From Macrostomum lignano (Eukaryota), in the NCBI GenBank assembly GCA_002269645.1, contig NIVC01000415.1, positions 372,001 through 436,000 on the forward strand: a DNA stretch of 64,000 nt, given 5' to 3'. Position numbers and translations under genes: made by a program. Below are positions 3,706-61,932 of the stretch, in pieces. Under the pieces are notes generated by a model that worked only from the letters and a program-made list of their open reading frames with translations, had not been told where the DNA came from and ran no database searches. The first letter of the stretch is position 1. Every line of letters starts with the position of its first letter.

Positions 3706-3765
3706 GTGAGTGATCAAAAGTGAGCTATCGTGAGACAGAGTCTTCAACCCTGCACTCCAGCTCAC

Positions 3766-25968: not shown

Positions 25969-26059
25969 TATGGAGATTATACGCTCGTAGATTAGATAAG
26001 CAAGGAAGTAGATAGGGATAACTGAAGTAAGATTAGATAAAAGGCTGAGCTGAATTAAG

Positions 26060-31640: not shown

Positions 31641-31952
31641 GGGTAGACGGTGAGTCATTACAGAGGTAAACCAATGTAAGCGATTATTCTGTAGCGTCAA
31701 GTGAGTCTGGCAAATGTTTTATAGATAGAGTTTAATTGGATCTACAACAGCTGCTGCAAACTACTGGACAGGAAAAGCAAAAGTGGCGAAAATTACCAGG
31801 TGGCACAGTTACTAATTGTCTGCAGTAACGGTAGGCACACCACACGTTTCAAACAAGGAACTAGTATAAACAAATTTAACTTTATTATCGGAACTCTTTG
31901 TTCAACAAACTAGACTGCTATACGTTGGAGGTCTTTGTTCTCGTCTCGTCTC

Positions 31953-32759: not shown

Positions 32760-33992
32760 GCGACACAAAATCATTGTCAGTAGGGCTACAAAATCACCGT
32801 CTGTAGCGACACAAAATCATTGTCAGTAGGGCTACAAAATCACCGTCTGTAGCGACACAAAATCATTGTCAGTAGTGACACAAAATCATTGTCAGTAGCG
32901 ACACTAAATCATTGTCAGTAGCGACACTAAATCATTGTCAGTAGTGACACTAAATCATTGTCAGTAGTGACACAAAATCATTGTCAGTAGCGACACAAAA
33001 TCATTGTCAGTAGCGACACAAAATCACTGTCAGTAGTGGCACAAAATCATTGTCAGTAGCGACACAAAATCATTGTCAGTAGCGACACAAAATCATTGTC
33101 AGTAGCGACACAAAATCATTGTCAGTAGTGGCACAAAATTATTGTCAGTAGCGACACAAAATCATTGTCAGTAGCGACACAAATACAAAATCATTGTCAG
33201 TAGTGGCACAAAATCATTGTCAGTAGCGACACAAAATCATTGTCAGTAGCGACACAAAATCATTGCCTGTAGCGACACAAATACAAAATCATTGTCAGTA
33301 GTGGCACAAAATCATTGTCAGTAGCGACACAAAATCATTGTCTGTAGCGACACAAAATCATTGTCTGTAGCGACACAAAATCATTGTCAGTAGCGACACA
33401 AAATCATTGTCAGTAGCGACACAAAATCATTGTCAGTAGCGACACAAAATCATTGTCAGTAGCGACACAAAATCATTGTCAGTAGTGGCACAAAATCATT
33501 GTCAGTAGCGACACAAAATCATTGTCAGTAGCGACACAAAATCATTGTCAGTAGCGACACAAAATCATTGTCAGTAGCGACACAAAATCATTGTCAGTAG
33601 CGACACAAAATCATTGTCAGTAGCGACACAAAATCATTGTCAGTAGCGACACAAAATCATTGTCAGTAGCGACACAAAATCATTGTCAGTAGCGACACAA
33701 AATCATTGTCAGTAGCGACACAAAATCATTGTCAGTAGCGAAACAAAAACATTGTCAGTAGTGACACAAAAACATTGTCAGTATTGGCACAAAATCATTG
33801 TCAGTAGCGACACAAAATCATTGTCAGTAGCGACACAAAATCATTGTCAGTAGCGACACAAAAACATTGTCAGTAGTGACACAAAAACATTGTCAGTAGT
33901 GACACAAAATCATTGTCAGTAGCGACACAAAATCATTGTCAGTAGCGGCACAAAATCATTGTCAGTAGCGGCACAAAATCATTGTCAGTAGC
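32760..33992. repeat. 23-bp minisatellite (GCGACACAAAATCATTGTCAGTA)
   Basis: ~50 tandem units with no unique spacers. Confidence 0.96.
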
Positions 33993-34850
33993 GCTAAAAA
34001 ATAGCGGTTTACTATAAATAGTTTCTATACTGACTTTGCTGGGTCCGGGATGCAAATAAAAGTACATATAGACCCAGGATACGACCAAAGCGCGAAGGAA
34101 AGATTTGGAATGCGAAAAGTTTTTACCATCGGGTGCACGTGATGCTGCGCTTGTTTTGTGCTGGATGGAATATTTATCACATGATATAGCTGGCTGGTAA
34201 ATGCAACGGCTTCTGGCACCTGAGGGGGCCAGGAACAGCTATTATAAGTCAACAGCTCAGCTAATCTGTTTGAGCCAATGTCTCAACCGATATTATATAT
34301 TACAAACCGATAATAAAGCTCCGGACCAAAAACTGGAATCGAGTCACTTGTTGGTGTTGTCGTTGTAACAATCACTAGGAATAGCAGCTATAGTAGAAGA
34401 ATCTTATAATACCCTTCAAGCCTATGAATAAATAATAGACTACTTTTTAGAAAATAGAATATCGGTAGCTATCGAACTACCTCGACTCAGACATTGCATG
34501 GCAACCATGCAGCGTTCTTTGCAGTTAGACTTAGCAGGACGGCAAAAGTGCGCTAGGAAACGCAACCGGATGGAAGTCAGCTGATCCAGTTCGTTGTGTC
34601 AGCTGATGCTGGCCAACCCATCTCCCCGCCTCCCTTCTTACCCTTCCCCGGTTTTCCAATTGTAGTTCGCTTCTTCCCGCGTGACCTGCGCGAACACTCG
34701 ACGGGCAAGAACTGAGGGGGGAGAGAGAGTGGAGGAGAAATCAAGTAGAAATATCCCGAAACCGACGGCGCCAATGCAGGCCAGGACCGCGACAGAATTT
34801 CGTTGCACCGCGAGAAAAAAGATTAGCCAGCTCGCTACGAGTAGAAGAAG

Positions 34851-35995
34851 ATGGAAACGGCCGACTTCACGAAGCTGTTTGCCTACGCGGTGCGCAGCGA
34901 CAAGCCAGCGGCTGACCTTCAGCTGCTCCTGGCTAGCGGCCGCGTCTGCCTGAGCCAGATCCGCGTCAAAGGCATGTCGCTGGTGCACTACGCGGCTCAC
35001 TACAACAAGCTGCAGCTGCTGCAGCTGCTGATTAAGCACGGCTGCAATCTGAACTGCGCCGACGAGGAGGGACTGTCGCCGATTCACATCGCCGCTCGCC
35101 GGGGCAGCACGGGCGCCCTGGTGGCACTGGCCGAGGCCGGCGCTCGCCTGCACTGGCAGCGCCCGAACTGCTACGATCGTCGCGACGCGGACTTCGCCGA
35201 CATCCCGGCCGAGGACACGGTCGAGGACCCGCTGTCCTACGCTGTAGAGAACGGGCACCTGCTGTGCGTGGAGGCCCTGCTGCGGCTTGGCGCCAATCCG
35301 AACTGTCGCTACTTCATGGGCGACCTGGTCTCGGTAATGAGCCTGGAGAATCTGCTCTGCCTCGAGCTGCTGCTCAGAGCCGGAGCCAATCCGGACACGT
35401 TCAACCGTTGGGGCCTCAGCCCGCTGATGCGCGCCTGTAAGGAGAGCCGCCTGGAAGCCGCCATGGTGCTGCTGTGCCACAAGGCCAACGTCGACCTACG
35501 TTCGTCATTCGCTTTCGGCGGCAAGTCGGCCATGTTCTACGCAATGAAGAACCGGCGCACCGACCTTATGCAGCTGCTGCTGAACAGCGGCGCCGATCCC
35601 GACCAGTTTGTGCAGAACGACACGACAGCGCTGGAGCTGGCCATCAAGCTGAACAGTCCGCCTATGCTGTGCTGCCTGTTGCGCAATCGAGCCGACCCGA
35701 ATCGGCCAAACCAGTCGGGCAGATACGAAATCTACCCGCTGCAGTTTCTGTGCTCCGTAGTTCGACTCGAGAGTCGCAACGTGCTGCTCAAACTGCTATT
35801 AGACGCCGGGGCGCGGCCGAATCAGCATAGCAACGTCAAGGACAAGATCTGTCTGGATGCACCCTGCCTGCCGCCGCTGGTTGAATACCTCGGCTGCAAC
35901 GAGGAGCTCGACGCCTTTACTGTGTACCTGCTGGTACAATTTGGAGCCAAGATTAATCTCTGTCAGGGAGCTTGCGGGTACACTCTGTTGGACAG
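34851..35995 (+). CDS. Ankyrin repeat and SOCS box protein (ASB family), exon 1
   Basis: Multiple ankyrin repeats (GMSLVHYAA, GLSPIHIAA, GLSPLMRAC, GKSAMFYAM, TTALELAI); donor AG|GTGAGA. Confidence 0.93.
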
Positions 35996-36099
35996 GTGAG
36001 AGAATGTCAGTTGCTCACTTTTTATTGTACCTTGATGATTGACTTCAGTTCATGCTCTTAGGTAATGAAGGGCGTGGATACAGGGCCTGCAGCATGATA

Positions 36100-36320
36100 G
36101 GATGCATGAGGATGAGCATGAGTCTATGGTCTTAATAAGGATGCAGGTGAGTGTATGCAGGCTGAATGAGGATGCATGTGAGTCTATGGTCTGAATGAGG
36201 ATGCAGGCGAGTCTATGGTGGTCTTAATGAGGATGCAGGCGAGTCTATGGTGGTCTTAATGAGGATGCAGGTGAGTCTATGGTCTGAATGAGGATGCAGG
36301 TGAGTCTATGATGGTCTCTG
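36100..36320. repeat. ~28-bp degenerate intronic repeat (GAGTCTATGGTCTGAATGAGGATGCAGG[T/C])
   Basis: ~7 units inside the ASB intron. Confidence 0.8.
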
Positions 36321-36470
36321 TACATTTACAATACATCAGTTTATAATACATCATGAGGATGTACAGGTAGAAGTGCCAGGATGATGCAAAAGTGCAAAAT
36401 TACAACTTCTCTTTGCATTTGCTTTCAATAAGCTACATGTACATTTACGAATTAAATGCCCCCCTCTCAG

Positions 36471-36765
36471 ATACGGTGTCCAAGGCCACCTGTCCCGCGT
36501 GTTGAACAATCCGGAGAATGCTCAACTAGCCGAGCTGCTATTATCCGCCGCCGTCAAGGTTGACCGAGCTGCCATCGCTAAAATGTCCCGGATCGGGCCG
36601 GAGCAGAAGGCCCTGGTGTTCAGCCTGACCAGCACGTCCTTGATGCGCCTGTGCCGGGTGCTGATTCGCGACCGGCTTCCAGCTCCACTGCCCAAGTCGG
36701 TGGGCGAGCTGCCGCTGCCGACTGTGCTCAAGAACTACCTGCTGTTTGACACTCCGCTGTGCTAA
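36471..36765 (+). CDS. ASB protein, exon 2 (SOCS box); total 479 aa
   Basis: CCCCTCTCAG| in phase; SLMRLCRVLIR (BC box) ... LPLPTVLKNYL (Cul5 box), then TAA. Confidence 0.92.
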
Positions 36766-39279
36766 GCTCGAGGTAAAGTATAATTTGTGCCGATAAGTAT
36801 CGAAAATATCTTTGACAGTGATTATTGGCAAAGAGGCAACAATGCTTACCCGCAGAAATTGTTTGAATTTTGGTAGCATTTTAGTACTGCGAATTGAATA
36901 TTTTTGCAGACTGTAGTAAAATACGAGCGTACTCTATAGCTAGATTCCTGTAAGTAGTACAGTTGAAAACAAGAAAAATCAAAACTACATATAATTAAAA
37001 ACCTTTGATCTTTTATAGCCTATTGAGATTTAAATTTTACCTTCAATCAGGTGCAGTAGCGAGATTTAGCCAGTTTCCAGTCTTGAAAGTATTCAAAGAG
37101 AATAATTTCCGGTACTGTTATGAAAATTTCTGGAGAAAAAGCCTTTTTTGCTTTAGTGAACCGTAAAAGTCACCGTTTCTGAAAGGAACAGAACTCTAAA
37201 AATAAGCAAGGCCGGGCGTTTTATCTAAAATTATTTTTAAATCCTTTTTGCTTTGTTTTCAGACCTTTGCACGCCAAAGACGAATGGGATAAAAACTTCG
37301 TTTCTTAGAAAATTTGAATATTCATTCAAATTTCATTTCGCTCGAAAAATTCACTGCGGAGATTCATGAGCGTATAGCGATGTATAAATAGTTTGAATGA
37401 TTGTCTCCTCCTATTGCTACACTGTATTTTTAGTAAAAGTTTATTTGAATTCTTCAGATATATAAACTTTTATGTATATTTTATATTTTTATATTCTTTC
37501 AAATGTATATTTTTTACTTTACATTTTTTCTAAACTTCCATCAACCAATGTTACAACCACAATATATACGAATTAAATCTCTTTTTTGTGCAGAAAAGAT
37601 AAATGAAACTTCGATCGTCTCTCCACAGTATTTTTGAGCAAAGCTACATGCATTCGTGCAGTTAATTAAAATTTTCTAAGAAACTATAACAACCATCTCG
37701 CGTGCAAGTAAATAGTCATCTGAGTTACAGTAATTCTATCGATACGTCGAGGATCAATGTTTAGAAACTTAAATTCAAGTGCAAAAAAGTAAAAAGCGAA
37801 TGAAAGTTTTTGCGACCAAGTAATCGACCATTATTCTGGCATAAGAAGTGTACAAAAGTTACTGTTGCCCAATGTAAATAAATTAGCACAATATGAGTGC
37901 TTGTAAATTGACATTAATATTCATATTACATTCATTACGTTTGTTTAATCACACTGTCTTTCCATTTCTCTATAATTGGCTCCACGTTTCCGCGTTGCAT
38001 TATAGTTTTTACTTTTCATCCATATAGCATTCGATCATTGTGAGCATTTACCCGTCATTTTGTACTCACTTGAATTCTTATACTCCGCTGGAAAACGGGC
38101 TCACGGAGCACCACCAAATATTCAAGACACATGCAGTTTTGCAAATTGCTGTAAATCTTATCCAAGAAATATGGCTCGTGCGCTTGATGAACATGCAGTT
38201 TTTTTAAATCGCTTTTAAAACGCCGTTTCAATTTCTTTTGCGTTGTAATTTTTTGTTTTGTTTCTACAAAACATTTTGTTAATGTTCTCTCTTGCGTGTT
38301 TTACTGTTTTTTTAATCGAATATTGTTTCCTAAATGAATTAAATGGTTATCTGCTCACAGGAGAAGTGTAAATACGATTGTAGATTTTCCAATTATGATT
38401 TCTTTATTTTTTATAAAAGTTCAAGGAGTTCAATTCTGAGTTTTCTAGCTTCCTTTTTGTTTTACTCGCATGCTTTTCTCCTCCAAATTTTCATTATCAC
38501 CCCAGTCAATCGGTTCTTTTGCATATTCATCGCATATTCATATTCAGTGGTTCTCTCGGTGAATTGATATTTTATACGTGTGTAGTGCGGTTTGCCGTGT
38601 ATACTACTCAATATGACTACTTATGTTTATTACAGCGTCTTTGCTTCAGTAGAAAGGCTTTATACAACGCTAACAGATTACTGCGTAGTGCGTCAAAATG
38701 TACAGCTTAAATATTTTCTTTTATGCATCCTTCTACTTGTATACTACTTGTAAATGTATTTGTGAAAGTTGAGAGACAATCGATTAATTACTTTATATTT
38801 CAACAGAATTTTTTTAGCTTAACCTTACTCGATTTTAAAAAAGTAAACAAATAAAACAAATATATATTTTGATAAATCACTTTCACGCACAAAAACAAAA
38901 ACTTTTTATATTGAGAGAAAACTTGATGTGTTTTTAACTTGTTACAATGTTTTGATATTTATTAAAGTGGGTATTTAAGGAAGTGGAGGTTTTACGAGCT
39001 AAAATTGAAGGTTCACCGGGAAACTAAATTGCATGAGAACTCGAAAAATGTTTAAGCAGACTTTTCCAATTACAAAAGCACAAATCGTGTGGTTTTTTTT
39101 ACTTATTTCACTGTGGTTACAAAAAAATATTTATGTCAAAAAAGCGAATGAAACGAAGCAACAGTAGGTACATGTACACGTATTTTCTGCTCTAAGACTT
39201 GAAGCGTGTGGTGTTGTAAAAACAGAAAACAGACACTGCAGTGTCTGTGACAATATGTCTTTAAGAGACTGAGTCGACC

Positions 39280-39549
39280 TCAGCAGCTTAAAATAAGCAT
39301 CCACCAAGCTAGCGCTTTCCAAAGCGCGATTATGCTGCCCCAGCGATATCCATTCGGTCCATTCCACCAGAAACGCCAGCTGTTGTCTCCGGAACTGGCC
39401 GGCTGGTTTGAGTCCCGACTCTGCAGCAGAGGCTGGTAGGACAGCTGCGTCGAGTACCAGAGCATTCGGCTGTTCCAAGGAGCCGCCTGCACAGGCGCAA
39501 GCACGCCTACATGCAGCAGCAGAACTAGTAGGAAACCGTAGCGACTCAT
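39280..39549 (-). CDS. Trp-rich small secreted-peptide precursor, copy 1 (89 aa)
   Basis: Signal-peptide-like MSRYGFLLVLLLHVGVLAPVQA; frame conserved with copy 2 (synonymous changes and a 3-nt indel); conserved TATA box upstream and AATAAA at 38626-38631. Confidence 0.68.
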   Translation of the reverse strand: MSRYGFLLVLLLHVGVLAPVQAAPWNSRMLWYSTQLSYQPLLQSRDSNQPASSGDNSWRFWWNGPNGYRWGSIIALWKALAWWMLILSC

Positions 39550-39642
39550 GCTTAAAACTGCTCAACTTTATAAGCTTTCTCAGTTATCTCAAGGGTCAAA
39601 CTACTGCGAAGAGAAGCATGAAATTCTTGACTCGCCAAACTG

Positions 39643-39650
39643 TATTTATA
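39643..39650 (-). promoter_or_regulatory. TATA box of peptide gene copy 1
   Basis: TATAAATA within a CCGCCGGTATAAATACAGTTTGGCGAGTCAA block identical in both copies. Confidence 0.6.
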
Positions 39651-39964
39651 CCGGCGGATTGGTTTGAAATCGAAGTTAGGAATGGACCAATAGGGACAGA
39701 GGTCGGATGGGGCTGAGGTGCCGAGCACTGACTCAACTGACTCTCGCGTCAATCCTGCGATAGTTTTTATCGAAACATAATCTGGCCTATCGAATCGTGA
39801 AGTATAATCCAGTCGTATAATGAAGTAGCTTAAGTGACAATATAAACTATTTTTCCGAATTATAAACTTGCCCAGATCAATTAGAGCCCCGGGCAACCCC
39901 AAGCATGATATTATCGTCTAGAGAAACATGTACTCGTATTAGGGGCAGCAACGCAGGGCGAAAG

Positions 39965-40235
39965 GAAGCGCCAGAGCCATACTGTAAGGAAGCGCCAGAG
40001 CCATACTGCAAGGAAGCGCCAGAGCCATACTGCAAGGAAGCGCCATGCAGAGCCATACTGCAAGGAAGCGCCAGAGCCATACTGCAAGGAAGCGCCAGAG
40101 CCATACTGCAAGGAAGCGCCAGAGCCATACTGCAAGGAAGCGCCAGAGCCATACTGCAAGGAAGCGCCAGAGCCATACTGCAAGGAAGCGCCATGCAGAG
40201 CCATACTGCAAGGAAGCGCCAGAGCTGTACTGTAA
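39965..40235. repeat. 24-bp repeat (GCGCCAGAGCCATACTGCAAGGAA)
   Basis: ~11 units here, 2-3 more at 41376-41450, and a single unit at the paralogous site near 57640. Confidence 0.9.
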
Positions 40236-40239
40236 GGAT

Positions 40240-41376
40240 TTTTCTGCCGCGACCCCATCAACACCCACATGGACCCGGACAATGTGGATAGTCGCCTCCC
40301 AGCTCTCAACATCAGGAGGGGCTTCCAGACCGCCATCCCTGGACGAGACAGCATTCCACTGGATGTCGGCGTGAACCAGCGCAGCCAGGGCATTCACTGC
40401 TTCACCGACGGCTCGCTGTTCAACGGGCGCGCTGGTGCGGTCATCGCCATTTTCCACGAGGTTAAGATCCTCTTCCAGGAAAGTCTGCACCTCAGTGAGA
40501 ACACCTCGGTTTTCCAAGCCGAAATTTGCGCCATTGAGCAGTGCGCCCAGCACCTGCTCCAGGTGAACATTAATAATTTCAATATTCACTTTTACAACTG
40601 ATAGCCAAGCCACTATCAAGGCTTTAACCACCGAGAAAATCTCCGCTGCTACAGTATCTCAATGCCACCGCAGTGTGCAATCCCTCTCAGTCCTTAACAG
40701 GATTAGAATTATCTGGACACCCGGTCACAGCAACTCCTGGGCGACGAGCTCGCGGATTCACTCGCCAAGGAGGGCAGCAACCCAGACGGCAACCACCGTC
40801 TGATGAGGCTACCCACTCCCAGGTCGCAAGTCACCCGCTATATCAACAGGTGGCTCCATCAGCAGCACCAGCTCCACTGGAACAGCTGCACCGAGTACAG
40901 GCAGACCCGCTTCCGAGTACAGAAACCTGAACAGGAAAGTCTCTGACTATCTGATATCGCTTAACAGAACCGACCTCATGGAGATGTGCATGGCCCTAAC
41001 CGGCCATGGATTCTTCCAGAGACATATCTCGTTGCAAACCGGTTGCCCTCCCACCTGCCCTTCTGTGGCATCACGTCACCTTCTGCCCTTACTTCAACAA
41101 GGCGCGGCACAAATACCTCGGCCACCCCCAGCGGATGGACGAGCTGACTACCCCGGAAAAATTCCTGACCTCTGCGCATTCGTCCGGGATACCGGCCGGA
41201 TGAGGGTCGCCGATGCCTCCCACTGCGAACCTGCCGACTACTGGCGAGGGCTGGGCGCACCCCCAGGGTTAATCCAAGGACCCCTGGTCGCTTTTACCTT
41301 GGGGTTGCGATAGAGGCGTCGCGGCCTATTCACGGCGCCTGCGCCCCTCGTCAGTAGTACTAGTAAGTAAGTAAGC
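40240..41376 (+). mobile_element. 5'-truncated non-LTR retrotransposon 3' end (RNase H + C-terminal Cys/His region), frameshifted
   Basis: CFTDGS..SVFQAEI..TDSQA..WTPGH..ELADSLAKEG spread across frames, then LTGHG..CP.C..H..FCP; ends in a (TAAG)3 tail. Confidence 0.85.
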
Positions 41377-41574
41377 GCCAGAGACAAACTGCAAGGGAGC
41401 GCCAGAGCCATACTGTAAGGAAGCACCAGACCTGTACTGTAAGGAAGTGCCATACGAGTATACTCGTACTGTAAGCCGATAGCAGCCGATGTTTGGGGGT
41501 CGCCGCTTCCTTTCCTTTCCCCTGGCTTCAAACCCGTCTGTGGCACCAGGTGTTCCAGGTGTGTTATGTTCCTC

Positions 41575-41895
41575 AACACATCTGTACCATAGACACTTGC
41601 CAACACATCTGTACCATAGACACTTACCAACACAATCTGTACCATAGACACTTACCAACAAAATCTGTACCATAGACACTTACCAACACAATCTGTACCA
41701 TAGACACTTGCCAACACATCTGTACCATAGACACTTACCAACACAATCTGTACCATAGACACTTACCAACAAAATCTGTACCATAGACACTTGCCAACAA
41801 AATCTGTACCATAGACACTTGCCAACACATCTGTACCATAGACACTTGCAAACACAATCTGTACCATAGACACTTGCCAACACATCTGTACCATA
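41575..41895. repeat. 28-bp minisatellite family X, array 1 (TCTGTACCATAGACACTT[GC/AC]CAACACAA)
   Basis: Same family at 54575-55145 and 57665-58790. Confidence 0.95.
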
Positions 41896-42879
41896 GGTAA
41901 CTCACAGGGTAGTGCAACATTGCCAAAATTATCCGTTTATTGTACGAAAATAATTCTAAGGGTCCGGATTAACACAATTTACACTAAATACATGTATGAG
42001 CTCGTAAAGGCATTAATGATAACAAAAAAATAAGACTGATAACATTAGAACTTTAAAGGCACCGCCATAGTTCTATTGGGAATTAAGAAAGATAAGACAA
42101 AACATGAAACATTAAAAGTAAACCAAGCGAAAGGATTCGAGCTCCAGATTCAAATTAAACACAGTTGAAAGAGTAGATAGAAATTGGCAATGAGCAGGCA
42201 GTGCTTCCTTCGTGTAAAAGAATATTTCCAAGTTAAATATCAGCAGTTCAATTCAAAGCTGTTAAAAATTTCAATGGCGCAAAAGGCTTTACTTTCTATT
42301 GTTTTTATTGGTAAAATAAAGTTTATCTGCGACATGCTACTCATAGTATAGAAAAAAGACACGAAAAAATAATTATGAGATTTTCATGTAATACGAGAGT
42401 AACTTACAAAATTGATAGCTATTGTGTAATAACAGTTTACAATGATGCAAGAGAACACAGTAAAAAGCTTTAAAGTAGTCATGCCGTAGCTCTATCAATC
42501 CTATAAAAATTATTTTAATGTCAGATATTTCTTTTAGACATTTTTGGCATTGACTTAAAATAACTCCAGTCCAGATGCTACCTCTAGAAGTCTTTGGCAT
42601 CGCCTAAAGATAATTCCAGTACAGAGGCTGACCCCTATAAGTCCTTGGCCATTTTGTACATTCAGACCATATTTAGTCCAGATTTTATTTCTAAAAGTCT
42701 TTGGCATTACTTTGAAAATCATTTCATTCTAGACACCATCTTTAGTGGGTTTTGGCCCTATATCAACACTTAGAACAAATTAGAACAAGTTCGTATAGAC
42801 AACAATCACAGCCCAGATAATATCTGTAGGTCTGCCGTATAAGACCTTAGATCCCATTCCTTCCTTGGCTACGAAGAAT

Positions 42880-43002
42880 TCACTTGACCCCTTGACCCCT
42901 CGAAAAGGTGCACCTTCGTTTTGGCATTGTACGAGCGTAAGCTGCAGGCAGCTCCTGCTGTTGCTGCTGCTGTTGCTACTGCTGTTGCTGCTGTTGCTCC
43001 TG

Positions 43003-43071
<69 letters not shown>
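42880..43071 (-). pseudogene. Degenerate polyQ terminal exon of the ELPP-motif gene, copy 1
   Basis: Positional paralog of 60333-60884; a CAG/CAA run with an in-frame TAG at 42978-42976, then ELPAAYART..GVK*. Confidence 0.5.
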
Positions 43072-43079
<8 letters not shown>

Positions 43080-43741
43080 TCGAAATTGAATAAATTAAGA
43101 AAGGAAAATTATTGATGGCAAATCGATAGAGCAACAAAGATTAGGCAATACAATTATAGATTACAGTGATGGATTTCTAATCTAGCCAACAGTATTGATA
43201 CAGAGAATGTAATGGATTGCTAATCCAGCCAACAGTATTGATACAGAGAATGCAATGGATTGCTTATCTAGTCAACGTCATTGATAAAGAAATATAATTA
43301 TGGATCTTAATTATGAATAATTTAGCAAATAATTGATAAATAGTTATGAATCTAGTCAGTTGTATAGATACAGGGAATATAATGGATTACTAAACTATAC
43401 CTTACCTACAACGAATTCAAAGGTACCATAATGGGTTATTAGTCAGACGTGAAATGCATAGGTAGGTGTTGCAAGCAGCTGTCTTTTCTCAGCAGGAATT
43501 ATAAACAAACGTGCGGTCAAAGCTGATTTACCCAGGGTAGGCGACTGAAAATTGCTGAGGGAAAATTTTACAAACGTCTGATGCTGGGCGCAAAAGATGG
43601 CGTCTGATAGACAGAAGAAACAAGAATGGTCCCATCTGCTGCGAAAACAAGCACTTTGAAGCCAGGTGCAGATTGAGCTACGTGGCGCCTGGGTAATAAG
43701 CATAGGTATTTCCTATTTGCAGATCTGTGCTACAGACTTTT

Positions 43742-43777
43742 TCATGCTAGCACGCGGCTGAAGAAAGGTGCAACCTG
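43742..43777 (-). CDS. Putative short alternative terminal exon (QVAPFFSRVLA*), copy 1
   Basis: TCTCAG|CAG acceptor, phase 0 with the upstream VVK exon; conserved in copy 2 together with ~300 nt of downstream sequence. Confidence 0.45.
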   Translation of the reverse strand, partial: QVAPFFSRVLA

Positions 43778-43789
43778 CTGAGACTCGAA

Positions 43790-44335
43790 TTCCAAACTAC
43801 TCAAACTCGAACCCCTGCTCAAACTCGAACCCCTGCTCAAACTCGAACCCCTACTCAAACTCGAATCCCCCCTACTCAAACTCGAATCCCCCTACTCAAA
43901 CTCGAATCCCCCTACTCAAACTCGAATCCCCCCTACTCAAACTCGAATCCCCCTACTCAAACTCGAATCCCCCTACTCAAACTCGAATCCACCCAACTCA
44001 AACTCGAATCCCCCCTACTCAAACTCGATTCCCAACCTACTGAGACTCGAATTCCAAACTACTCAAACTCGAATCCCAACCTACTGATACTCGAATTCCA
44101 ACCCACTCAAACTCGAACCCCTACTCAAACTCGAATCCCCCCTACTCAAACTCGAATCCCCCTACTCAAACTCGAATCCACCCTACTCAAACTCGAATCC
44201 CCCCTACTCAAACTCGATTCCCAACCTACTGATACTCGAATTCCAAACTACTCAAACTCGAATCCCAACCTACTGAGACTCGAATTCCAAACTACTCAAA
44301 CTCGAATCCCACCCTACTTAAACTCGAGTAGACTA
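43790..44335. repeat. ~20-bp minisatellite (ACTCAAACTCGAATCCCCCCT)
   Basis: Tandem units; shorter paralog at 61390-61610. Confidence 0.9.
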
Positions 44336-44403
44336 CTCGACTAAACTCTCTTAAAACTTGAATTCCAAACTGTTCACAAGGCCAAATAAAAAAGTCTACT
44401 CAC

Positions 44404-44682
44404 TTTAACTACACCAAACGTTGCCGTCGATCTGGGAGTTTTCACTAGAGAGCCTCGCTTACCGCCGCCGCTGCCGCCGCCGCTACCGCCGCCGCCGCTT
44501 CTACAGTCAGCGGGACTATTGGACGTTGATGCACCAGGATTTTCAACCGGCTGTTTCTGATCAAAGAAATAAATTAAATCTTTGACTGTATCTCTTTTGT
44601 TCGGGCCTGCTTCTGTGGCGCCTGTGTCTTCATTGTCAGCTTGTTGGCCGTTCAGCGGATGAGAAGCATCGGATCCTGCAGC
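44404..44682 (-). CDS. ELPP-motif/polyQ gene copy 1, internal exon
   Basis: AATCAG| AAGSD...TVKDLIYFFDQKQ...GKRGSLVKTPRSTATFGVVK |GTGAGT, 279 nt, phase 0-0; paralog of 61651-61932. Confidence 0.65.
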
Positions 44683-44929
44683 CTGATTTAAATTGTATAA
44701 CAGTATAATACTTGCTGTAAGCCTGCAATACTTCAGTCTGAGATTAGTACTAAAAGGCTGAAGCATCGTTTTGCTAAATTAAAAAAAAATCAAAAAATTC
44801 TGTACTTTACAGTTTAGCTTCCTTCGAATTCAATTTTTTTGCGAACGCATAGATCAATATTATCCATTATTATCAATCTATCCATCCATGCAGTATACTA
44901 AAAATGGTTTATCTCTACCTAGGTGCGTG

Positions 44930-45895
44930 ATTTGTTTCCGAAAAAAACGGCTCAGTGATTTGTTTCCGAAAAAAACGGCTCAGTGATTTGTTTCCGAAAA
45001 ACGGCTCAATGATTCTTTTCCGAAAAAACGGCTCAGTGATTTGTTTCCGAAAAACGGCTCAGTGATTTGTTTCCGAAAAAACGGCTCAATGATTCTTTTC
45101 CGAAAAACGGCTCAGTGATTTGTTTCCGAAAAACGGCTCAGTGATTTGTTTCCGAAAAACGGCTCAATGATTCTTTTCCGAAAAAACGGCTCAGTGATTT
45201 GTTTCCGAAAAACGGCTCAGTGATTTGTTTCCGAAAAAAACGGCTCAGTGATTTGTTTCCGAAAAAAACGGCTCAGTGATTTGTTTCCGAAAAACGGCTC
45301 AATGATTTGTTTCCGAAAAAACGGCTCAGTGATTTGTTTCCGAAAAAACGGCTCAGTGATTTGTTTCCGAAAAAACGGCTCAGTGATTTGTTTCCGAAAA
45401 AACGGCTCAGTGATTTGTTTCCGAAAAAAACGGCTCAGTGATTTGTTTCCGAAAAAACGGCTCAGTGATTTGTTTCCGAAAAAAACGGCTCAGTGATTTG
45501 TTTCCGAAAAAAACGGCTCAGTGATTTGTTTCCGAAAAAACGGCTCAGTGATTTGTTTCCGAAAAAACGGCTCAGTGATTTGTTTCCGAAAAAAACGGCT
45601 CAGTGATTTGTTTCCGAAAAAAACGGCTCAGTGATTTGTTTCCGAAAAACGGCTCAATGATTCTTTTCCGAAAAAACGGCTCAGTGATTTGTTTCCGAAA
45701 AACGGCTCAATGATTCTTTTCCGAAAAAACGGCTCAGTGATTTGTTTCCGAAAAACGGCTCAGTGATTTGTTTCCGAAAAACGGCTCAATGATTCTTTTC
45801 CGAAAAAACGGCTCAGTGATTTGTTTCCGAAAAACGGCTCAGTGATTTGTTTCCGAAAAAACGGCTCAGTGATTTGTTTCCGAAAAAACGGCTCA
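44930..45895. repeat. 26-28-bp minisatellite (CGGCTCAGTGATTTGTTTCCGAAAAAA)
   Basis: ~35 units with a variable A-run. Confidence 0.95.
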
Positions 45896-54546: not shown

Positions 54547-54574
54547 TGTGAACATATTGAACTCATTTTCTGTA

Positions 54575-55590: not shown

Positions 55591-56515
55591 TATATGCAGG
55601 CAGTGATCTCTTCGTGCAAAAACATTCTGGTAACATCCTGTCTTGCGTGTTCTTTTTTCAATCGAATAAGAGCTATATATTGTTTCCTAAATTTATTAAA
55701 TCGTACATGTATCGATTCTCCTTTTTTCTTTCTTTTTTAAAAGTTCAAATAGTTAAATTCTAAGTTTGTTTTTTTGTTTTCTTTTCCCTTTAAAAAAACT
55801 TAATCATTAATCAGTCAATCGCTCCTTGCATTGTTCCTGGATTCAGTGGTTCGCTTAGTAAATTGATATTTTATAGTACAGTTTGCCGTGTATACTACTC
55901 ATGTTTATTGCAGCGTCTTTGCTTCAGTAAACAAGGCTTTATACAACGCGAACCGATTACTGCGTTGTGCGTGTGAAATGTACAGCTACAAGTAGTATAA
56001 TACGAGTACACGTATTTTGCTTGTGAAAGTTTGAGACGATAATAAATTCTTTTAAACAAAAATCAGCTATCTTTCTCAACTTTCAAAAGAGTAAATAAAT
56101 AAAACGAAATCATTTTTCATGAATCACTTTCACGCACATTTTTTATATTGAGGGAAAACTTGACGTATTTTTAATTCGTTACAATATGTTTTGACACTGC
56201 ATATAGATTTTTAAAGTGGGTGTTAAAGGAAGTGGGGGCATATGGTTATACTATACGCGCGATCTACGATAGAAGTTTACCAAAAAATTACAGAGAATTC
56301 GAAAAAAATGTAACTTCCGTGTATTGCAAAAGCAGAAATTTGGTAGGTTTTTTCTGACTTATTTGTTGACTGTGGTTACCACAAAAACGTTCGATGCATG
56401 TGAAAGCGCTTTGAAACGAAACAACAAGTAGGTGCAAGGACGAATTTGTTCCTAAAAAAATGAAGCGTGGTGCCACAAACAGAAAACAGACACTTGTCTC
56501 CGAGAAACCGAGCCC

Positions 56516-56788
56516 TCAGCAGCTCAAAATGAGCATCCGCCAGCTAGCTAGCGCTTTCCAAAGCGCGATTATGCTGCCCCAGCGATATCCATTCGGTCCA
56601 TTCCACCAAAAACGCCAGCTGTTGTCTCCGGAACTGGTCGGCTGGTTTGAGTCCCGACTCTGCAGCAGAGGCTGGTAGGACAGCTGCGTCGAGTACCAGA
56701 GCATTCGGCTGTTCCAAGGAGCCGCCTGCACAGGCGCAAGCACGCCTACATGCAGCAGCAGAACTAGTAGGAAACCGTAGCGACTCAT
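56516..56788 (-). CDS. Trp-rich small secreted-peptide precursor, copy 2 (90 aa)
   Basis: Same frame as copy 1; ATG at 56788 (the track start at 56800 is a TTG); TATAAATA at 56878-56871; AATAAA at 55909-55904. Confidence 0.68.
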   Translation of the reverse strand: MSRYGFLLVLLLHVGVLAPVQAAPWNSRMLWYSTQLSYQPLLQSRDSNQPTSSGDNSWRFWWNGPNGYRWGSIIALWKALASWRMLILSC

Positions 56789-57664
56789 GCTCAAGTACAA
56801 GCTTTCTCAGTTGTCTCAAGGGTCGCTCTACAGCGAAGCGAAGCATGAAAATTATTGACTCGCCAAACTGTATTTATACCGGCGGATTGGTTTGAACTCG
56901 AAGTTAGGAACGGGCCAATAGGGACAGAGGTCGGATGTCTTGGAATTTGTACGGATCCCGGGAAACACAGACAGAGAGGACAGAGTTCCGAGGTGCCGGG
57001 GACTGACGTAATTCGACTCTCGCGTCTATCCCGGTGTTACGGTTTAGAATCTCCGGGGCTCCAGCCAATTTTGGGTCGCCGATCCGGAGACTGCAAACGG
57101 GCTGGGATCTCGGACCGGAGACCTTAAAGGGTTTAAAATCTCCTTCATGAAATACAAGCCTCCCCGCGCTACGAGATCCCTAATCCTTGTGGGATCTCCA
57201 GGGCAAGGTCAGGTCTCTCTATCCGGAGATCCCGATCTCCGTCACGAGCGCAAAAACTATAAAGGTTTGATTTGGGATCTCCGGGTTTAAAAAAACTGGA
57301 GATTCGTTCAAATTCAGAGTATTTGATTCAAGTAGCTATTCGACGATTAGAAAGTAAGAAAATCGCAAATTGACAACTGATTATCATAAGCTAATTTACT
57401 GCTCATATACAATTTGCCATAATTTCACCTATAGCTGTCGCGTTCAATGGCCCATTCCAAATAAGATGACAAAACACCGAAAAGAACTCTTTAAATACCC
57501 CTCGTAACTGCTCCCACTGATAAAATCATTAATTCACCCAGATCAATTAGGGCAACTGGCAACAACGGAGCATGATATTTTAACCGCCTAAATATATGTA
57601 CGCTCGTATTTAGGGCAGCAGCACCAGGCGTAAAGAGGCGCCAGAGCCATACTGTAAGGAAGCG

Positions 57665-58790
57665 CCAACACATTTGTACCATAGACACTTACCAACAAAA
57701 TCTGTACCATAGACACTTGCCAACAAAATCTGTACCATAGACACTTGCCAACAAAATCTGTACCATAGACACTCACCAACACAATCTGTACCATAGACAC
57801 TTACCAACAAAATCTGTACCATAGACACTCACCAACACAATCTGTACCATAGACACTTGCAAACACAATCTGTACCATAGACACTTGCAAACACAATCTG
57901 TACCATAGACACTCACCAACACAATCTGTACCATAGACACTTGCAAACACAATCTGTACCATAGACACTTGCAAACACAATCTGTACCATAGACACTTGC
58001 AAACACAATCTGTACCATAGACACTCACCAACACAATCTGTACCATAGACACTTACCAACACAATCTGTACCATAGACACTTACCAACAAAATCTGTACC
58101 ATAGACACTCACCAACACAATCTGTACCATAGACACTTGCAAACACAATCTGTACCATAGACACTTACCAACAAAATCTGTACCATAGACACTTACCAAC
58201 ACAATCTGTACCATAGACACTTGCCAACAAAATCTGTACCATAGACACTTGCAAACACAATCTGTACCATAGACACTCACCAACACAATCTGTACCATAG
58301 ACACTTGCAAACACAATCTGTACCATAGACACTTACCAACAAAATCTGTACCATAGACACTTACCAACAAAATCTGTACCATAGACACTTACCAACAAAA
58401 TCTGTACCATAGACACTTACCAACACAATCTGTACCATAGACACTTGCAAACACAATCTGTAACATAGACACTTACCAACACAATCTGTACCATAGACAC
58501 TTGCAAACATAATCTGTACCATAGACACTTGCAAACACAATCTGTACCATAGACACTTACCAACACAATCTATACCATAGACACTTGCAAACACAATCTG
58601 TACCATAGACACTCACCAACTCAATCTGTACCATAGACACTTGCAAACACAATCTGTACCATAGACACTTACCAACACAATCTGTACCATAGACACTTGC
58701 AAACACAATCTGTACCATAGACACTCACCAACACAATCTGTACCATAGACACTTGCAAACACAATCTGTACCATAGACACTTGCAAACAC
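57665..58790. repeat. 28-bp minisatellite family X, array 3
   Basis: ~40 units with CTTAC/CTCAC/CTTGC variants. Confidence 0.96.
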
Positions 58791-59793
58791 ACAGTGTATA
58801 ATATGTAGATAAATAAAGGCAAACACTGAAAAAAATTATTAATACTTTTTTACGGAATAAAAGATAAAACCACAGAATAGAACTGTGGATAAAACGGTGC
58901 AAGTGCTGAAATTATCCGTTTATTGTAGGAACACAATAAACAGGATTAATCTTGTGCATGATCGCAGGAAGTTAAATGATAAAATACTAACTGGAATGAT
59001 GAGCGATAGTCCCAATTATCTTAATATACTAAATATAGTCATTATTAAATAACTAAAGCATGATAACATTAGCATCTTCAGGGCACCGCCATAATTCTAT
59101 TGGGAAGTAAAAATATCGAGACAAAAATATGGAAAAATAAAATAAGTGAAAGTATTCGAACTCTAGATTCAAATTCACCACAATAGAACGCATTTATAGA
59201 AGTTGGCAATGAGCAGGCAGTGGTCTCTTTGTGTACAAAATTTTTGCAAGAAAAATATGATCTGGAATATCAGCAAGTTAATTCAAAGCTGCTAAAAAAA
59301 GAGGCACAAAAGTTTTTTCCATTATTTTTATTGGTAAAATATTATTATTCTGAGTTATACTACTCATAGTAGAGAAAAGGACGCGTGAAAAGGACGCGAG
59401 GTTTACATGAAATACGAGATTAAATTATAGAAAAGTTTAGCAGACAGAACTGGAATGACAACACAAGGATATCTGGATATTTACACGTAGACAGTGCAGG
59501 GTCTTCTCGGAGAGTAACCTGGATTGGATAGCTATAATGACAGTTCAAAAATGATGCAAGAGAACGCAGTAAAATCTATAAAGTAGTTCAATCAACTCCA
59601 TAAAAATTTAGACAGGAAAATTATTTTATTGTCAGATATTTTCTTTAAGAACTTTTTGGCATTAACTTTAAATAACTCCAGTCCAGATGCTACCTCTAGA
59701 AGTCTTTGGCATCGCCTAAAGATAATTCCAGTCCAGAGGCTGATCTCTTTAAGTCTTTGGCCATTTTTTACATTTGAGCCAAATTTAGTCAAA

Positions 59794-60112
59794 GGGGGTT
59801 GTCGCCTAGTGATTACATGTAGAGCGTCAAACTCACGAATTGAAGGTCGGGGTTTCGATTCCTGATCCCACCTGGAACAATTTGTGTCCTTGAGCAAGAC
59901 GCTTCACTCTGCATTGCTTCAGTTCACACAGCTGTAAAATGGGTGCCAGCATTAGCTGGGGTAATTGAGGCTGTGTGTCAACCCGCCAGTCCTTGGACTG
60001 AACAGCCGTACGCAGCCTTCAGATGCGCCGCGCAATAGCTGCGGCTGAGCTGTCGGTTGCACATCTGGCCCAATTGGGGCAGGTGTAATCAATTATTGTT
60101 ATTATTATATTA
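59794..60112 (+). mobile_element. tRNA-derived SINE copy 3 (uninterrupted)
   Basis: Full head-body-tail, (TTA)-rich tail, TTAGTC(C)AAA flanking duplication; empty site at ~42672. Confidence 0.9.
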
Positions 60113-60332
60113 TTAGTCCAAATTCTACCTTTAAAAGTCTTTGAACTCCCTTCAAGGACAATTCCAGTCTAGACACTATCTTTAGAGATCTTTGGCCCTA
60201 TTTTACATGAAAAAGAAATTAGCCGAGTTATCAATGCACACAACTATCCCAGTCCAGATACTATCTATAGATTTAGAAGTCCATTACATGGCTACAAAAG
60301 ATCAAACCGATCCCTGATCCCACAATGAGCCG

Positions 60333-60648
60333 TCAGTTGCTAAACAGGGCTCGCAAATTCTTTGCCATTCCTTCCGGAGGCAGTTCGCCCCGACCCCTGG
60401 CCTCCAGCAGTCGCTGACCGTCGACCTCGCCGCTGTCAGCTGGGTCGTCCCGAACTTCGAATTTCGGTTGTCGAAACGAGCGCTGTCCGAACCGCAGCCG
60501 GGCTTCGGTGTCCGACGATGTTCGCGCTGAGTCGCGAGATTGATCGAATTTTTGGCGCCAAAGTCGCAGCATTGATTTGGTGTTGTTGGCTGGGGGCAGC
60601 TCGCTCTGATCCTCGGGTGAGTCATCAAGCTTCTCATCCTGTTGCTGC

Positions 60649-60680
<32 letters not shown>

Positions 60681-60726
60681 TTGCTGCTGCTGTTGCTGCT
60701 GCTGTTGCTGCTGCTGTTGCTGTTGC

Positions 60727-60769
<43 letters not shown>

Positions 60770-60884
60770 GTTGTTGCTGCTGCTGCTTCTGCTGCTGCTG
60801 CTGATGCTGCTGCTCTGGAGGCAGAGCGATCTCCGTTGGCTTGGGACGGCACACATTGGATGCAGATCGGCTGATGCTAATGGG
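60333..60884 (-). CDS. ELPP-motif/polyQ gene copy 2, long terminal exon
   Basis: CTGCAG| phase 0; ~55-residue polyQ; SELPPANNTKSMLRLWRQK and GELPPEGMAKNLRALFSN*. Confidence 0.72.
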
Positions 60885-61341
60885 CTGCAGTTGCAAAATT
60901 GTAGGAAATCATTATGGATATATCCAAGGATTGCTAATCTATCTAACTGTATTGATATAGGGAATATAATGGAATACTAAACATATACCTTACCTAAAAC
61001 GAATTCAAAGGGACCCAACCCAATAAGGGTTATTAATCAGACGTGGAACGCATAGGTAAGGTTCTGCGAGCAGCTGTCTTTTCCCAGCAGGAATTATAAA
61101 GGAACAGGGTTTCAAAGCTGATGGCTGACGGCTAGGCGAGAGAAAATTGCTTAGGAAAAAATGTTACAAACGTCTGATGCTGGGCAGGAAAAACGGCTTC
61201 TTATGAAAAGAAGAAGCGAGACAAGAATGGTCCCATCTGCTGGGAAGGCAAGCACTTTAAAGCCAGGTGCAGATTGGGCCCCGTGGCGCCTGGGTAATAA
61301 GCATAGGATTTCCTCTTTGCAGATCTGTGCTACAGACTTTT

Positions 61342-61377
61342 TCATGCTAGCACGCGGCCGGAGAAAGGTGCAACCTG
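61342..61377 (-). CDS. Putative short alternative terminal exon (QVAPFSGRVLA*), copy 2
   Basis: TCTCAG|CAG acceptor, conserved with 43742-43777. Confidence 0.45.
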   Translation of the reverse strand, partial: QVAPFSGRVLA

Positions 61378-61650
61378 CTGAGATTAGAATTCCAACCTAC
61401 TCAAACTCGAACTCCACCCTACACAAACTTGAATTCCCAACCTACTCAAACTCAAATCCCACCTTATTCAAACTCGAATTCGGACAACCTACTCAAACTC
61501 AAACTCCACCCTACTCAAACTGAAACTCAAATGTACTCAAACTCGAACTCCACCCTACTCAAACTCGAATCCGACCCTACTCAAACCCGAATTCCAACCT
61601 ACTGAAACTTGCTTACCGAACTCACGGGGCCAATTAGAAAGTCTACTTAC

Positions 61651-61932
61651 TTTAACTACATCAGTCGTTGCCGCCGATCCAAGGGATTTCACTAGAGAGC
61701 CTCTCCTTCCGCCGCCTCTCAAGTCAGCAGCGGGTTTATTGGACGCCAATCCTCCCAGAGTTCCAGCTGCCTCCTTCTGGCGCCACAAATTAAGCAAAGC
61801 CTTGGCTGTGCCTTGTTCCGGCAGGCAGTCTTTGTTGCTGGGATCGTCCGCTGCTGGCTGGTCGTCTTTTAAGGCTTCGAGCGGCTCCAAAACAACTGCG
61901 GTCACTGCCACAGGCGGCGCCGGAGAAGTTGG
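61651..61932 (-). CDS. ELPP-motif/polyQ gene copy 2, internal exon
   Basis: TTTTCACAG| PTSPAPP..DCLPEQGTAKALLNLWRQKE..VVK |GTAAGT, 282 nt, phase 0-0. Confidence 0.72.

Follow-up and report, generated by a model that had tools for sequence, protein, structure and literature searches.

The locus considered here raises the question of whether two short, closely similar open reading frames (ORFs) in the flatworm Macrostomum lignano are genes that the annotation has missed, and what kind of product such genes might provide. The window, by which the whole stretch of 64,000 nucleotides that was analysed is meant, had been said in a preliminary description to contain two minus-strand ORFs of 89 and 90 aa. 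Both the coordinates and the translations were confirmed.

39280..39549, minus strand: ORF of copy 1 (c1), 89 codons plus TGA, translated as MSRYGF...MLILSC
56516..56788, minus strand: ORF of copy 2 (c2), 90 codons plus TGA; compared with c1, it carries A51T, one additional Ser and a Trp83-to-Arg replacement

The c1 protein contains nine Trp residues, all within the mature part. The differences first reported between the two copies matched the alignment exactly. They consist of three synonymous changes (TTC/TTT, CTT/CTC, TTA/TTG), two replacements (A51T, GCC/ACC; W83R, TGG/CGG) and a single indel, a 3-nt AGC insertion in c2 that is in frame and adds the extra Ser. The first 150 nt of the coding sequence (CDS) are the same in both. 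The flanks had been described as rich in indels, and this is indeed the case, with 23-34% substitutions in addition. At the second Trp of the C-terminal tail, the TGG of c1 stands against CGG in c2 and in a third copy (c3), a CpG transition, and the Trp of c1 is probably the derived state. Direct observations of this work are the two ORFs with their conservation profile, the compositional signs of coding, the architecture of the duplication and the absence of homologs.

Locus and Gene Neighbourhood

The neighbourhood of c1 is anchored by an ORF of 382 codons at 34851-35999, which is 100% identical to BOX15_Mlig009209g2, an ankyrin-repeat/SOCS-box protein of M. lignano. This ankyrin gene is present on two contigs of the assembly GCA_002269645.1 (Mlig_3_7), namely NIVC01000415.1 (locus L002) and NIVC01002254.1 (locus L001). 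L002 is 100% identical to window positions 24851-46765, which identifies NIVC01000415.1 as the source of the window, and L001 is a collinear copy that is approximately 86-94% identical to L002. A flatworm source had been assumed when the ORFs were first described, and this proved correct. The genome of M. lignano is neopolyploid, and its three subgenomes (S, L1, and L2) show SNP differences of about 2% in addition to many insertions (PMC10733133); for this reason, L001 was treated as a homeolog.

The ankyrin gene is the only annotated gene in L001 and in L002, and the Trp-rich ORF is unannotated in both. The default minimum length in TransDecoder is 100 aa. The GenBank annotation pipeline retained only TransDecoder-positive transcripts that did not overlap with repeats (PMC5730564), filters that would drop an ORF of 89-90 aa in a repeat-dense region and thus account for the missing annotation. 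Another ORF of the window, at 49247-49654, was also searched, and homologs were not found.

The two copies lie within a tandem segmental duplication.

38268..44472, no strand assigned: segment A, which holds c1 and is collinear with 55619-61719
55619..61719, no strand assigned: segment B, which holds c2 and is collinear with 38268-44472

The duplicated segments are at least 6.2 kb long, are offset by 17.0-17.7 kb and share 70-82% identity outside the CDS; their collinearity is broken up by minisatellites and indels. Fragments of gag (zf-CCHC) and RT are located at 46454-47681, between c1 and c2 and on the same strand.

The homeologous contig carries the third copy.

NIVC01002254.1 (L001), approximately 14792-15057, minus strand: c3, with an intact ATG and 72 in-frame codons, followed by a frameshift

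The in-frame part of c3 shows one synonymous and one conservative change. After codon 72, I73K and a 1-nt deletion lead to the ending ...GYRWGSKMRFGKR-stop, giving a product of 79 aa without the hydrophobic tail. The deletion could be a true lesion or an assembly error. Mlig_3_7 is a Canu assembly of PacBio reads polished by Pilon with short reads (PMC5730564), and a residual assembly indel looks the same as a true lesion here because short polishing reads multimap in a near-identical multicopy CDS. If the deletion is real, c3 could be a redundant copy lost after polyploidy or a soluble variant. Frame-breaking changes in orthologs had been named at the outset as evidence against a gene; the deletion in c3, which may reflect an assembly error or the loss of a redundant copy, touches on this point, and it weakens the coding reading without overturning it.

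The frameshifted product ends in ...KMRFGKR-stop, that is, in an amidation-type RF-Gly-Lys-Arg end. The RFGKR frame of c1 and c2 spans six codons, with a stop before it in its own frame and no slippery site. An amidation frame was therefore rejected as a by-product of the near-palindrome GCGCTTTGGAAAGCGC, and the end of c3 is most likely a coincidence of the same near-palindrome.

Evidence for a Coding Sequence

One argument for coding comes from the extent of the conservation. In all three pairwise comparisons, sliding windows gave 98-100% identity over a stretch that coincides exactly with the span from ATG to stop codon. Past the stop codon, identity drops sharply after a few bases, even between c1 and its homeolog c3, and in every comparison, the conserved tract has one boundary no more than about 10 nt from the ATG and the other at the stop codon. 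The composition changes over the same region: the CDS is a GC island (0.56-0.57, against 0.33-0.42 in the surroundings). The order GC3 > GC1 > GC2 is found in this frame only, and the adjoining ankyrin exon has the same pattern. TGG triplets are distributed over phases 0/1/2 as 9/0/2, and given the base composition, the probability of at least nine Trp in 89 codons is 2e-4.

The N-terminus was examined with a simple filter for n-, h- and c-regions, which was applied to the 67 non-repetitive ATG-initiated ORFs of 60-150 aa in the window. Only the c1 and c2 ORFs passed as signal-peptide-like (2/67), with 0.17 passers expected per locally shuffled window.

The pattern of substitutions points weakly in the same direction. 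The ratio dN/dS between c1 and c2 is approximately 0.20, and 6 of the 10 variable CDS sites in the three copies are third positions; this favours coding, but the sample is too small for a significant test of selection. The excess of synonymous changes listed at the outset does not amount to proof of selection, since the sample is so small, and gene conversion is needed as well.

Other sources of conservation were also considered. A structured non-coding RNA was rejected: the fold of the CDS has a z-score of +0.20 against shuffled sequence, and the best Rfam matches reach 21-22 bits, against gathering scores of 88-100. A second open frame on the same strand overlaps the ORF at 39131-39565, and an antisense ORF lies at 39408-39716. 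Both were rejected because they have no Pfam match, show a worse pattern of substitutions and do not fit the phases of GC3 and TGG. On balance, the ORF is probably translated.

Promoter-like Block and 3' Signals

The following elements surround the ORFs.

39622..39709, minus strand: promoter-like block of c1, with an inverted CCAAT at 39687-39691, CCAAT at 39658-39662 and TATAAATA at 39643-39650
39550..39621, minus strand: putative 5' UTR of c1, approximately 70 nt, with a variable upstream ATG (39617-39619) and, in c2, an indel of 12 nt
56789..56937, minus strand: putative 5' UTR and promoter-like block of c2, with TATAAATA at 56871-56878
39102..39107, minus strand: candidate non-canonical poly(A) signal AATAAG with an A-run, about 175 nt past the stop codon, kept in three of three copies
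38560..38700, minus strand: conserved 3' block, a candidate 3'-UTR end, with the canonical AATAAA at 38626-38631, about 650 nt past the stop codon

The conserved region upstream of the ORF spans approximately 160 nt, and the promoter-like block within it is 82-94% identical among the copies. Further upstream, c1 and c2 cannot be aligned. The conservation of the TATA block had been claimed from the beginning, and TATAAATA does occur at the corresponding place in both copies. Its arrangement with the two CCAAT elements suggests a promoter role on the strength of consensus elements, and transcription of c1 would be expected to start near 39619-39622. The ORF can be considered complete at its 5' end because in-frame stops are located 15 nt (c1) and 21 nt (c2) before the ATG.

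At the 3' side, the counterparts of the AATAAG and its A-run are found at 56363 for c2 and at position 14651 of L001 for c3. A conserved downstream AATAAA had also been reported. The canonical hexamer is kept in all copies (55909 in c2), but it lies far from the stop codon, and the nearest conserved hexamer is AATAAG. The block at 38560-38700 diverges by 8-9% between c1 and c2 and by 0.7% between c1 and c3, against 23-46% in the adjoining sequence; covariation supporting a fold was not found in it. These results support the initial view that the unit is duplicated and apparently lacks introns; its ORF is complete and follows a promoter-like block of CCAAT and TATA elements.

Homogenisation of the Copies

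The similarity of the coding regions is greater than their surroundings would predict. Synonymous divergence between c1 and c2 is 0.05, against 0.23-0.34 at the aligned positions of the flanks, which is approximately 5-fold lower. Three synonymous differences were seen, and about 16 were expected (P = 7e-5). Because synonymous divergence is so far below that of the flanks, gene conversion has to be invoked beyond purifying selection. The CDS is also devoid of phylogenetic structure: c2 and c3 differ by no more than c1 and c3, although the latter two are positional homeologs. In the 3' flank (39000-39279), the divergence is about equal among all three copies. The deficit of synonymous differences, the identical first 150 nt and the unstructured CDS together indicate concerted evolution. 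The copies have probably been homogenised by gene conversion, with tracts limited to the region that selection keeps similar.

Architecture of the Predicted Protein

Three segments of the c1 product can be mapped onto the DNA.

39484..39549, minus strand: signal-peptide-like segment, residues 1-22, MSR / YGFLLVLLLHVGVLA / PVQA, predicted cleavage VQA|AP
39337..39378, minus strand: Trp-rich motif WRFWWNGPNGYRWG, residues 58-71, invariant in the three aligned copies
39283..39333, minus strand: C-terminal hydrophobic segment IIALWKALAWWMLILSC, residues 73-89

The signal-peptide-like start and the hydrophobic C-terminus noticed earlier are thus both present in the ORF. For the classical secretory pathway, a basic n-region, an uncharged h-region of 7-15 residues and small residues at -1/-3 were looked for, and under this heuristic filter, the N-terminus of c1 and c2 (MSR / YGFLLVLLLHVGVLA / PVQA|AP) has all of these. 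Its Kyte-Doolittle (KD) maximum over 11 residues is 2.89, and the cleavage site VQA|AP was predicted from the -3/-1 rule. Residues 23-57 form a polar stretch rich in Ser and Gln. The 15-mer of the Trp-rich motif has an interfacial free energy of -6.4 kcal/mol on the Wimley-White scale, which would make it strongly interface-seeking.

The C-terminal tail had been described as hydrophobic/amphipathic and the product as possibly cytolytic; the tail proved not to be amphipathic, and the cytolytic idea finds no backing in the sequence. An amphipathic membrane-lytic helix is recognised by a helical hydrophobic moment of about 0.4 or more (Eisenberg scale) and a cationic face. Mean hydrophobicity and moment of the tail are 0.65 and 0.16 in c1 and 0.43 and 0.17 in c2, and the moment of the c3-like tail is 0.07. 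A lytic amphipathic helix is not indicated because the moment is low and the hydrophobicity is uniform. In c1, IIALWKALAWWMLILSC has a KD mean of 1.83 over 17 residues and an octanol-scale sum of -10.6 kcal/mol. The AlphaFold2 model is all-helical and of low confidence (mean pLDDT 63, pTM 0.28), too low for a fold search; it places a C-terminal helix at residues 65-88, and residues 71-80 are its best block of ten (mean pLDDT 78).

Whether such a tail could serve as an anchor was judged by the features of known classes. A type-I protein has a hydrophobic segment of about 19 residues or more with a KD mean of at least 1.6, followed by a basic cytosolic flank. The 19-residue KD mean is 1.57 in c1 and 1.36 in c2, and the protein ends at the hydrophobic segment, so that there is no cytosolic flank. 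The tail of 17 residues contains Lys and, in c2 and c3, Arg too. Stable membrane spanning is uncertain because the tail is short, holds these charged residues and is not followed by a basic flank. For GPI attachment, an N-terminal signal, a C-terminal hydrophobic tail and small residues at omega and omega+2 about 8-12 residues before the tail were sought by eye. The signal and the tail are present, while the omega candidates near the tail have Pro, Tyr or Ile at omega+1 or omega+2, and the sole clean triplet found by this inspection, S-S-G (residues 52-54), lies 18 residues before the tail. The tail is a possible GPI signal, though a well-placed omega site is not apparent.

The release of short peptides can be assessed from the same sequences. 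The c1 and c2 proteins contain no dibasic site, no Gly-basic site and no N-glycosylation sequon. Their basic residues are isolated (R28, R45, R59, R69, K78), and the only Cys is the last residue. The dibasic or Gly-dibasic sites that characterise precursors of neuropeptides and peptide hormones (FLP, NPF) are consequently missing from both copies. The earlier proposal that monobasic Arg processing could release short Trp-rich peptides found no support in the sequence, and convertase-type release in general is without such support because dibasic and Gly-basic sites are absent. Trp-rich cationic AMPs are short, Trp/Arg-rich mature peptides freed from a precursor by defined processing. The mature part has 13% Trp and a net charge of +3; recognised processing sites and similarity to known AMPs are absent.

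Relatives and Closest Known Systems

The family had not been recognised when the ORFs were first described, and the searches of Pfam, protein collections and the PDB, all without relatives, bear this out. Pfam gave no match at E <= 10, and the PDB gave none either. A word-indexed search of a collection of 5.8 billion clusters (15 billion sequences) yielded no candidates, and a look-up of the exact protein sequence found no record. The exhaustive phmmer search of 1.84 billion representatives returned only three marginal compositional matches, to unrelated repeat-rich proteins. In a metagenome scan, 28 loci were found, all of one gut-bacterial secreted protein that shares the 8-mer WRFWWNGP (WRFWWNGPDGSR). 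As a relative, this protein was rejected: it is a single independent occurrence, and a per-position probability of 6e-13 over approximately 1e12 positions (an estimated size) is compatible with chance. The peptide was not found in a text search of the literature. It was likewise not found in the text and the searched supplements of Weber et al. 2018 (PMC5977470), nor was its DNA found in those supplements.

The closest parallels within the species are the gland-expressed seminal-fluid candidates Mlig-pro1-76 (Weber et al. 2018, PMC5977470), which are also small products. Signal peptides are common among them, many have no BLAST hit outside the genus and several have near-identical genomic copies; for the prostate-limited transcripts, 31/76 were without a BLAST hit and 38/65 had signal peptides (PMC5977470). 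The hydrophobic C-terminus of the Trp-rich ORF would be atypical of soluble seminal proteins of this kind.

Another comparison is with small single-pass membrane proteins of type I, such as the FXYD family, whose signal peptide is cleaved off. The Trp-rich ORF resembles this type in its size of about 60-90 aa, predicted signal peptide, short putative ectodomain and one predicted C-terminal hydrophobic helix with AxxxA (small-xxx-small) spacing. It differs in having no FXYD motif, Pfam match, cytosolic tail or basic stop-transfer flank, and its helix comprises only 17 residues with Lys (and Arg in c2 and c3). Indolicidin and tritrpticin are 13-residue peptides released from cathelin-type precursors, and puroindolines are Cys-knotted seed proteins with a Trp-rich loop. 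The cluster of Trp and Arg (WRFWW...YRW), the predicted affinity for interfaces and the net positive charge are reminiscent of these molecules, whereas their precursor architecture, processing sites and any sequence similarity are lacking, and the tail is not amphipathic. The class I fusion glycoproteins of viruses are large and contain fusion peptides, heptad repeats and a Trp-rich pre-transmembrane region. Here too, an aromatic, interface-seeking stretch lies directly N-terminal to a putative membrane anchor, but a stand-alone product of 67 aa has no such elements and no similarity to these proteins, so that the resemblance is physicochemical only. Flatworm precursors of FMRFamide-like peptides and NPF combine a signal peptide with a short propeptide and have the canonical amidation end [KR]-x-R-F-Gly-dibasic. 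The order of signal peptide and short propeptide is similar, and the frameshifted c3 ends in ...KMRFGKR; c1 and c2, however, have neither a Gly-dibasic site nor a PP-fold or repeated-peptide architecture.

Proposed Reading and Its Alternatives

The reading favoured here, to which we give an even chance, is that of an unannotated, lineage-restricted M. lignano gene for an ER-targeted microprotein that is membrane-associated via its tail. From the DNA itself, we infer that the gene is transcribed and that its product is targeted to the ER, cleaved at the predicted site and retained at membranes in the orientation described below. The gene family would comprise at least two tandem paralogs and a homeologous copy, each with a compact CCAAT/TATA promoter that would give rise to a short intronless mRNA. 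The product of 89-90 aa would enter the ER by means of a cleavable signal peptide of 22 residues, and the mature protein of 67-68 aa would be kept membrane-associated by its C-terminal hydrophobic helix. The invariant Trp/Arg-rich motif WRFWWNGPNGYRWG would then lie at the membrane-water interface, with the polar Ser/Gln-rich linker facing the lumen or the cell exterior. Such a product may be a type-I-like microprotein of the surface or of secretory granules, whose paralogs would owe their near-identity to two processes, purifying selection and a gene conversion limited to the CDS.

The same gene might instead encode a secreted or processed bioactive peptide that is not anchored in a membrane, with an antimicrobial or membrane-active role, a role in seminal fluid or gland secretion or a neuropeptide-like role; in that case, the hydrophobic C-terminus would either act once the peptide is released or be cut off as a signal for GPI attachment. 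The prostate glands of M. lignano commonly produce orphan secreted proteins (PMC5977470), and the signal-peptide-like start, the charge and Trp content of the mature part and the strongly interface-seeking Trp-rich motif suit a soluble peptide. The tail of c2 and c3, with Lys and Arg, scores below the usual transmembrane thresholds, and the truncated c3 product, ending in RFGKR, would be soluble. Nevertheless, we regard a soluble product as fairly unlikely. The low moment of the tail (0.16-0.17) argues against an amphipathic lytic helix, dibasic and Gly-basic processing sites are absent from c1 and c2, no small-residue omega triplet lies at the usual distance of 8-12 residues (S-S-G is 18 residues upstream), and there is no match to AMPs, neuropeptides or any other family. 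The flatworm AMP repertoire, moreover, offers no conserved families for comparison (PMC10414684). A more far-reaching reading takes the ORF as the founder of a family of membrane-active microproteins peculiar to Macrostomum, perhaps of de novo origin and evolving in concert across tandem and homeologous copies, in which the Trp-rich motif and a minimal anchor would remodel or permeabilise membranes and c3 would be a naturally truncated, soluble variant with an RF-amide-type end; we consider this improbable. The settings named for a membrane-active product are release from gland granules, interactions of gametes or of the epidermis, and defence. The antimicrobial, adhesive and reproductive roles put forward at the outset are conjectures.

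Two further explanations dispense with a host gene of this kind. The ORF may be untranslated, a pseudogenic or non-coding segment that recent gene conversion has kept similar, its signal-peptide look being fortuitous or a relic. With synonymous divergence about 5-fold below that of the flanks, conversion has certainly acted, and were it the only cause of the conservation, the ORF could be a matter of chance. The frameshift of c3, the statistically indecisive ratio of synonymous to nonsynonymous changes, the second open frame that overlaps the ORF and the absence of annotation, of homologs and of the ORF itself from the protein collections searched are all consistent with this. We still consider a non-coding segment unlikely, since in each comparison conservation gives out close to the ATG (about 10 nt at most) and at the stop codon, the indel of c2 is in frame, and GC3 and the phase of TGG match this frame only. 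A signal-peptide-like start located just 3' of a conserved CCAAT/TATA block would also be improbable by chance, and neither an RNA-structure signal (z = +0.20) nor an Rfam match over threshold was found. Alternatively, the unit could belong to a transposable element, for example, as an LTR with a TATA box, a poly(A) signal and an accessory ORF, so that c1 and c2 would be the two LTRs of one element or dispersed copies. The units are direct repeats approximately 1.3 kb long and 17.3 kb apart, they contain a TATA box and AATAAA, and the space between them holds the same-strand fragments of gag (zf-CCHC) and RT. However, on one side, and only there, the collinearity extends at least 4.7 kb past the unit (42.0-44.5 kb against 59.1-61.7 kb). 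For one copy, this extended homology would be part of the putative element, and for the other, it would lie beyond it, as expected of a segmental duplication and not of a pair of LTRs. The homeolog has the same single-copy context adjoining the ankyrin gene, further copies were not found in the 64 kb and 22 kb searched, and a divergence of about 26% between the supposed LTRs fits poorly with a well-preserved ORF. Both an LTR pair and a dispersed element were rejected on the basis of the collinear homology of at least 6.2 kb and of copies at syntenic or tandem positions only; the 86 kb examined gave no sign of the dispersed element that had been named among the possible refutations of the gene reading, and a transposable origin appears very improbable.

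Significance for M. lignano

Returning to the membrane-associated microprotein favoured above, an orphan small secretory or membrane protein would be ordinary for M. lignano, a species in which orphan secretory proteins are already known to be abundant. The Trp-rich microprotein bears on no long-standing open question, and its Trp-rich juxtamembrane design could be of interest to membrane biophysicists. If it is expressed, the annotation of this flatworm model, which omits products under about 100 aa, would have passed over a gene, and the locus would provide a clean case of a microprotein that is taxonomically restricted and has a compact promoter. This promoter could then act as a small cell-type-specific driver for transgenesis in M. 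lignano. Expression would also make the locus an example of concerted evolution limited to the coding region in a neopolyploid genome.

Sequence Comparison of the Three Copies

The Trp-rich ORF is present as two tandem paralogs in the window, c1 and c2, and as a third copy, c3, in the locus L001 on the homeologous contig NIVC01002254.1. The following stretches were compared:

window 39000-39279, 3' flank of c1
window 56285-56515, 3' flank of c2
L001 14542-14790, 3' flank of c3
L001 14792-15057, minus strand, c3 ORF

The 3' flanks diverge by 24-30%, about equally between c1, c2 and c3; outside this flank, c1 and c3 are only 1-8% apart. Three states of the coding sequence are common to c2 and c3 and are not found in c1. 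Together, the equal flank divergence and these shared states suggest mosaic exchange among paralogs and homeologs.

In c3, a 1-nt deletion cuts the product to 79 aa, with the C-terminal end KMRFGKR-stop. The letters of this end are found in c1 and c2 in an alternative frame, which is closed. The KMRFGKR end is an RF-amide-type processing motif.

Sequence 3' of the ORFs

window 38560-38700, 55860-55985 and L001 14060-14205, conserved block, ~650 nt past the stop
window 39229-39248, perfect 20-nt palindrome ACAGACACTGCAGTGTCTGT, shortly past the c1 stop codon

The block is conserved far above neighbouring sequence, and all three copies contain TATAAAG, AATAAA and TATAAAA. No covariation supporting a fold was found in it, and for this reason it could be read as the end of a 3'-UTR or as a separate element. 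The palindrome originated in a c1-specific insertion and is missing from c2 and c3.

Repeats and Retroelement Remnants

window 41574-41896, 54569-55148, 57665-58791 and L001 18106-18854, 28-nt minisatellite CAACACAATCTGTACCATAGACACTTGC
window 1-1486, 1854-3741, 26030-27195, 30287-31648, 32760-34002, 44927-45895 and 62021-62923, example minisatellite arrays
window 60639-60814, (CTG)n tract within the region 60302-60896
window 40239-41573, GC-rich 1.3-kb insertion adjoining c1
window 46454-47681, minus strand, LTR-type retroelement, fragments of gag (zf-CCHC) and reverse transcriptase, between c1 and c2

The minisatellite CAACACAATCTGTACCATAGACACTTGC, which the homeolog shares with three sites of the window, differs widely in copy number (12 to 40) from place to place. 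Arrays of minisatellites (periods about 19-150 nt) are extremely dense across the whole window and generate many long spurious ORFs in every frame. The (CTG)n tract, frame by frame, gives poly-Gln, poly-Ser and poly-Ala ORFs.

The insertion has no counterpart on the c2 side or in the homeolog. It contains a weak RNase H-like ORF (40269-40601, plus strand; PF00075, E = 0.018, below the cutoff) and probably represents a fragment of a decayed retroelement.

Bacterial Look-Alike of the Trp-Rich Motif

A metagenome scan with the flatworm motif returned loci L003-L030, in which VWRFWWNGPDGSRGEW lies in a large secreted protein (>1000 aa; e.g., L007 2878-6078, plus strand) without a Pfam domain. An exact 8-mer is common to this protein and the motif. 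The loci all represent one human-gut bacterium's protein, and the 8-mer was judged coincidental.

Other Genes and ORFs

window 34851-36765, plus strand, ankyrin-repeat/SOCS-box gene Mlig009209, 479 aa
window 49247-49654, minus strand, 135-aa ORF

Mlig009209 is the sole annotated gene of locus L002 (window 24851-46765). It and the c1 peptide gene are convergent, and the two homeologous contigs encode identical Mlig009209 proteins. The 135-aa ORF, for which a search of the protein collection returned no homolog, has exon-like composition (GC 0.54, GC3 0.59) and carries the TM-plus-polybasic segment IAIFCSVGLGAILLIAVSVGLAYKLVRRRR; it may be a further unannotated lineage-specific exon.
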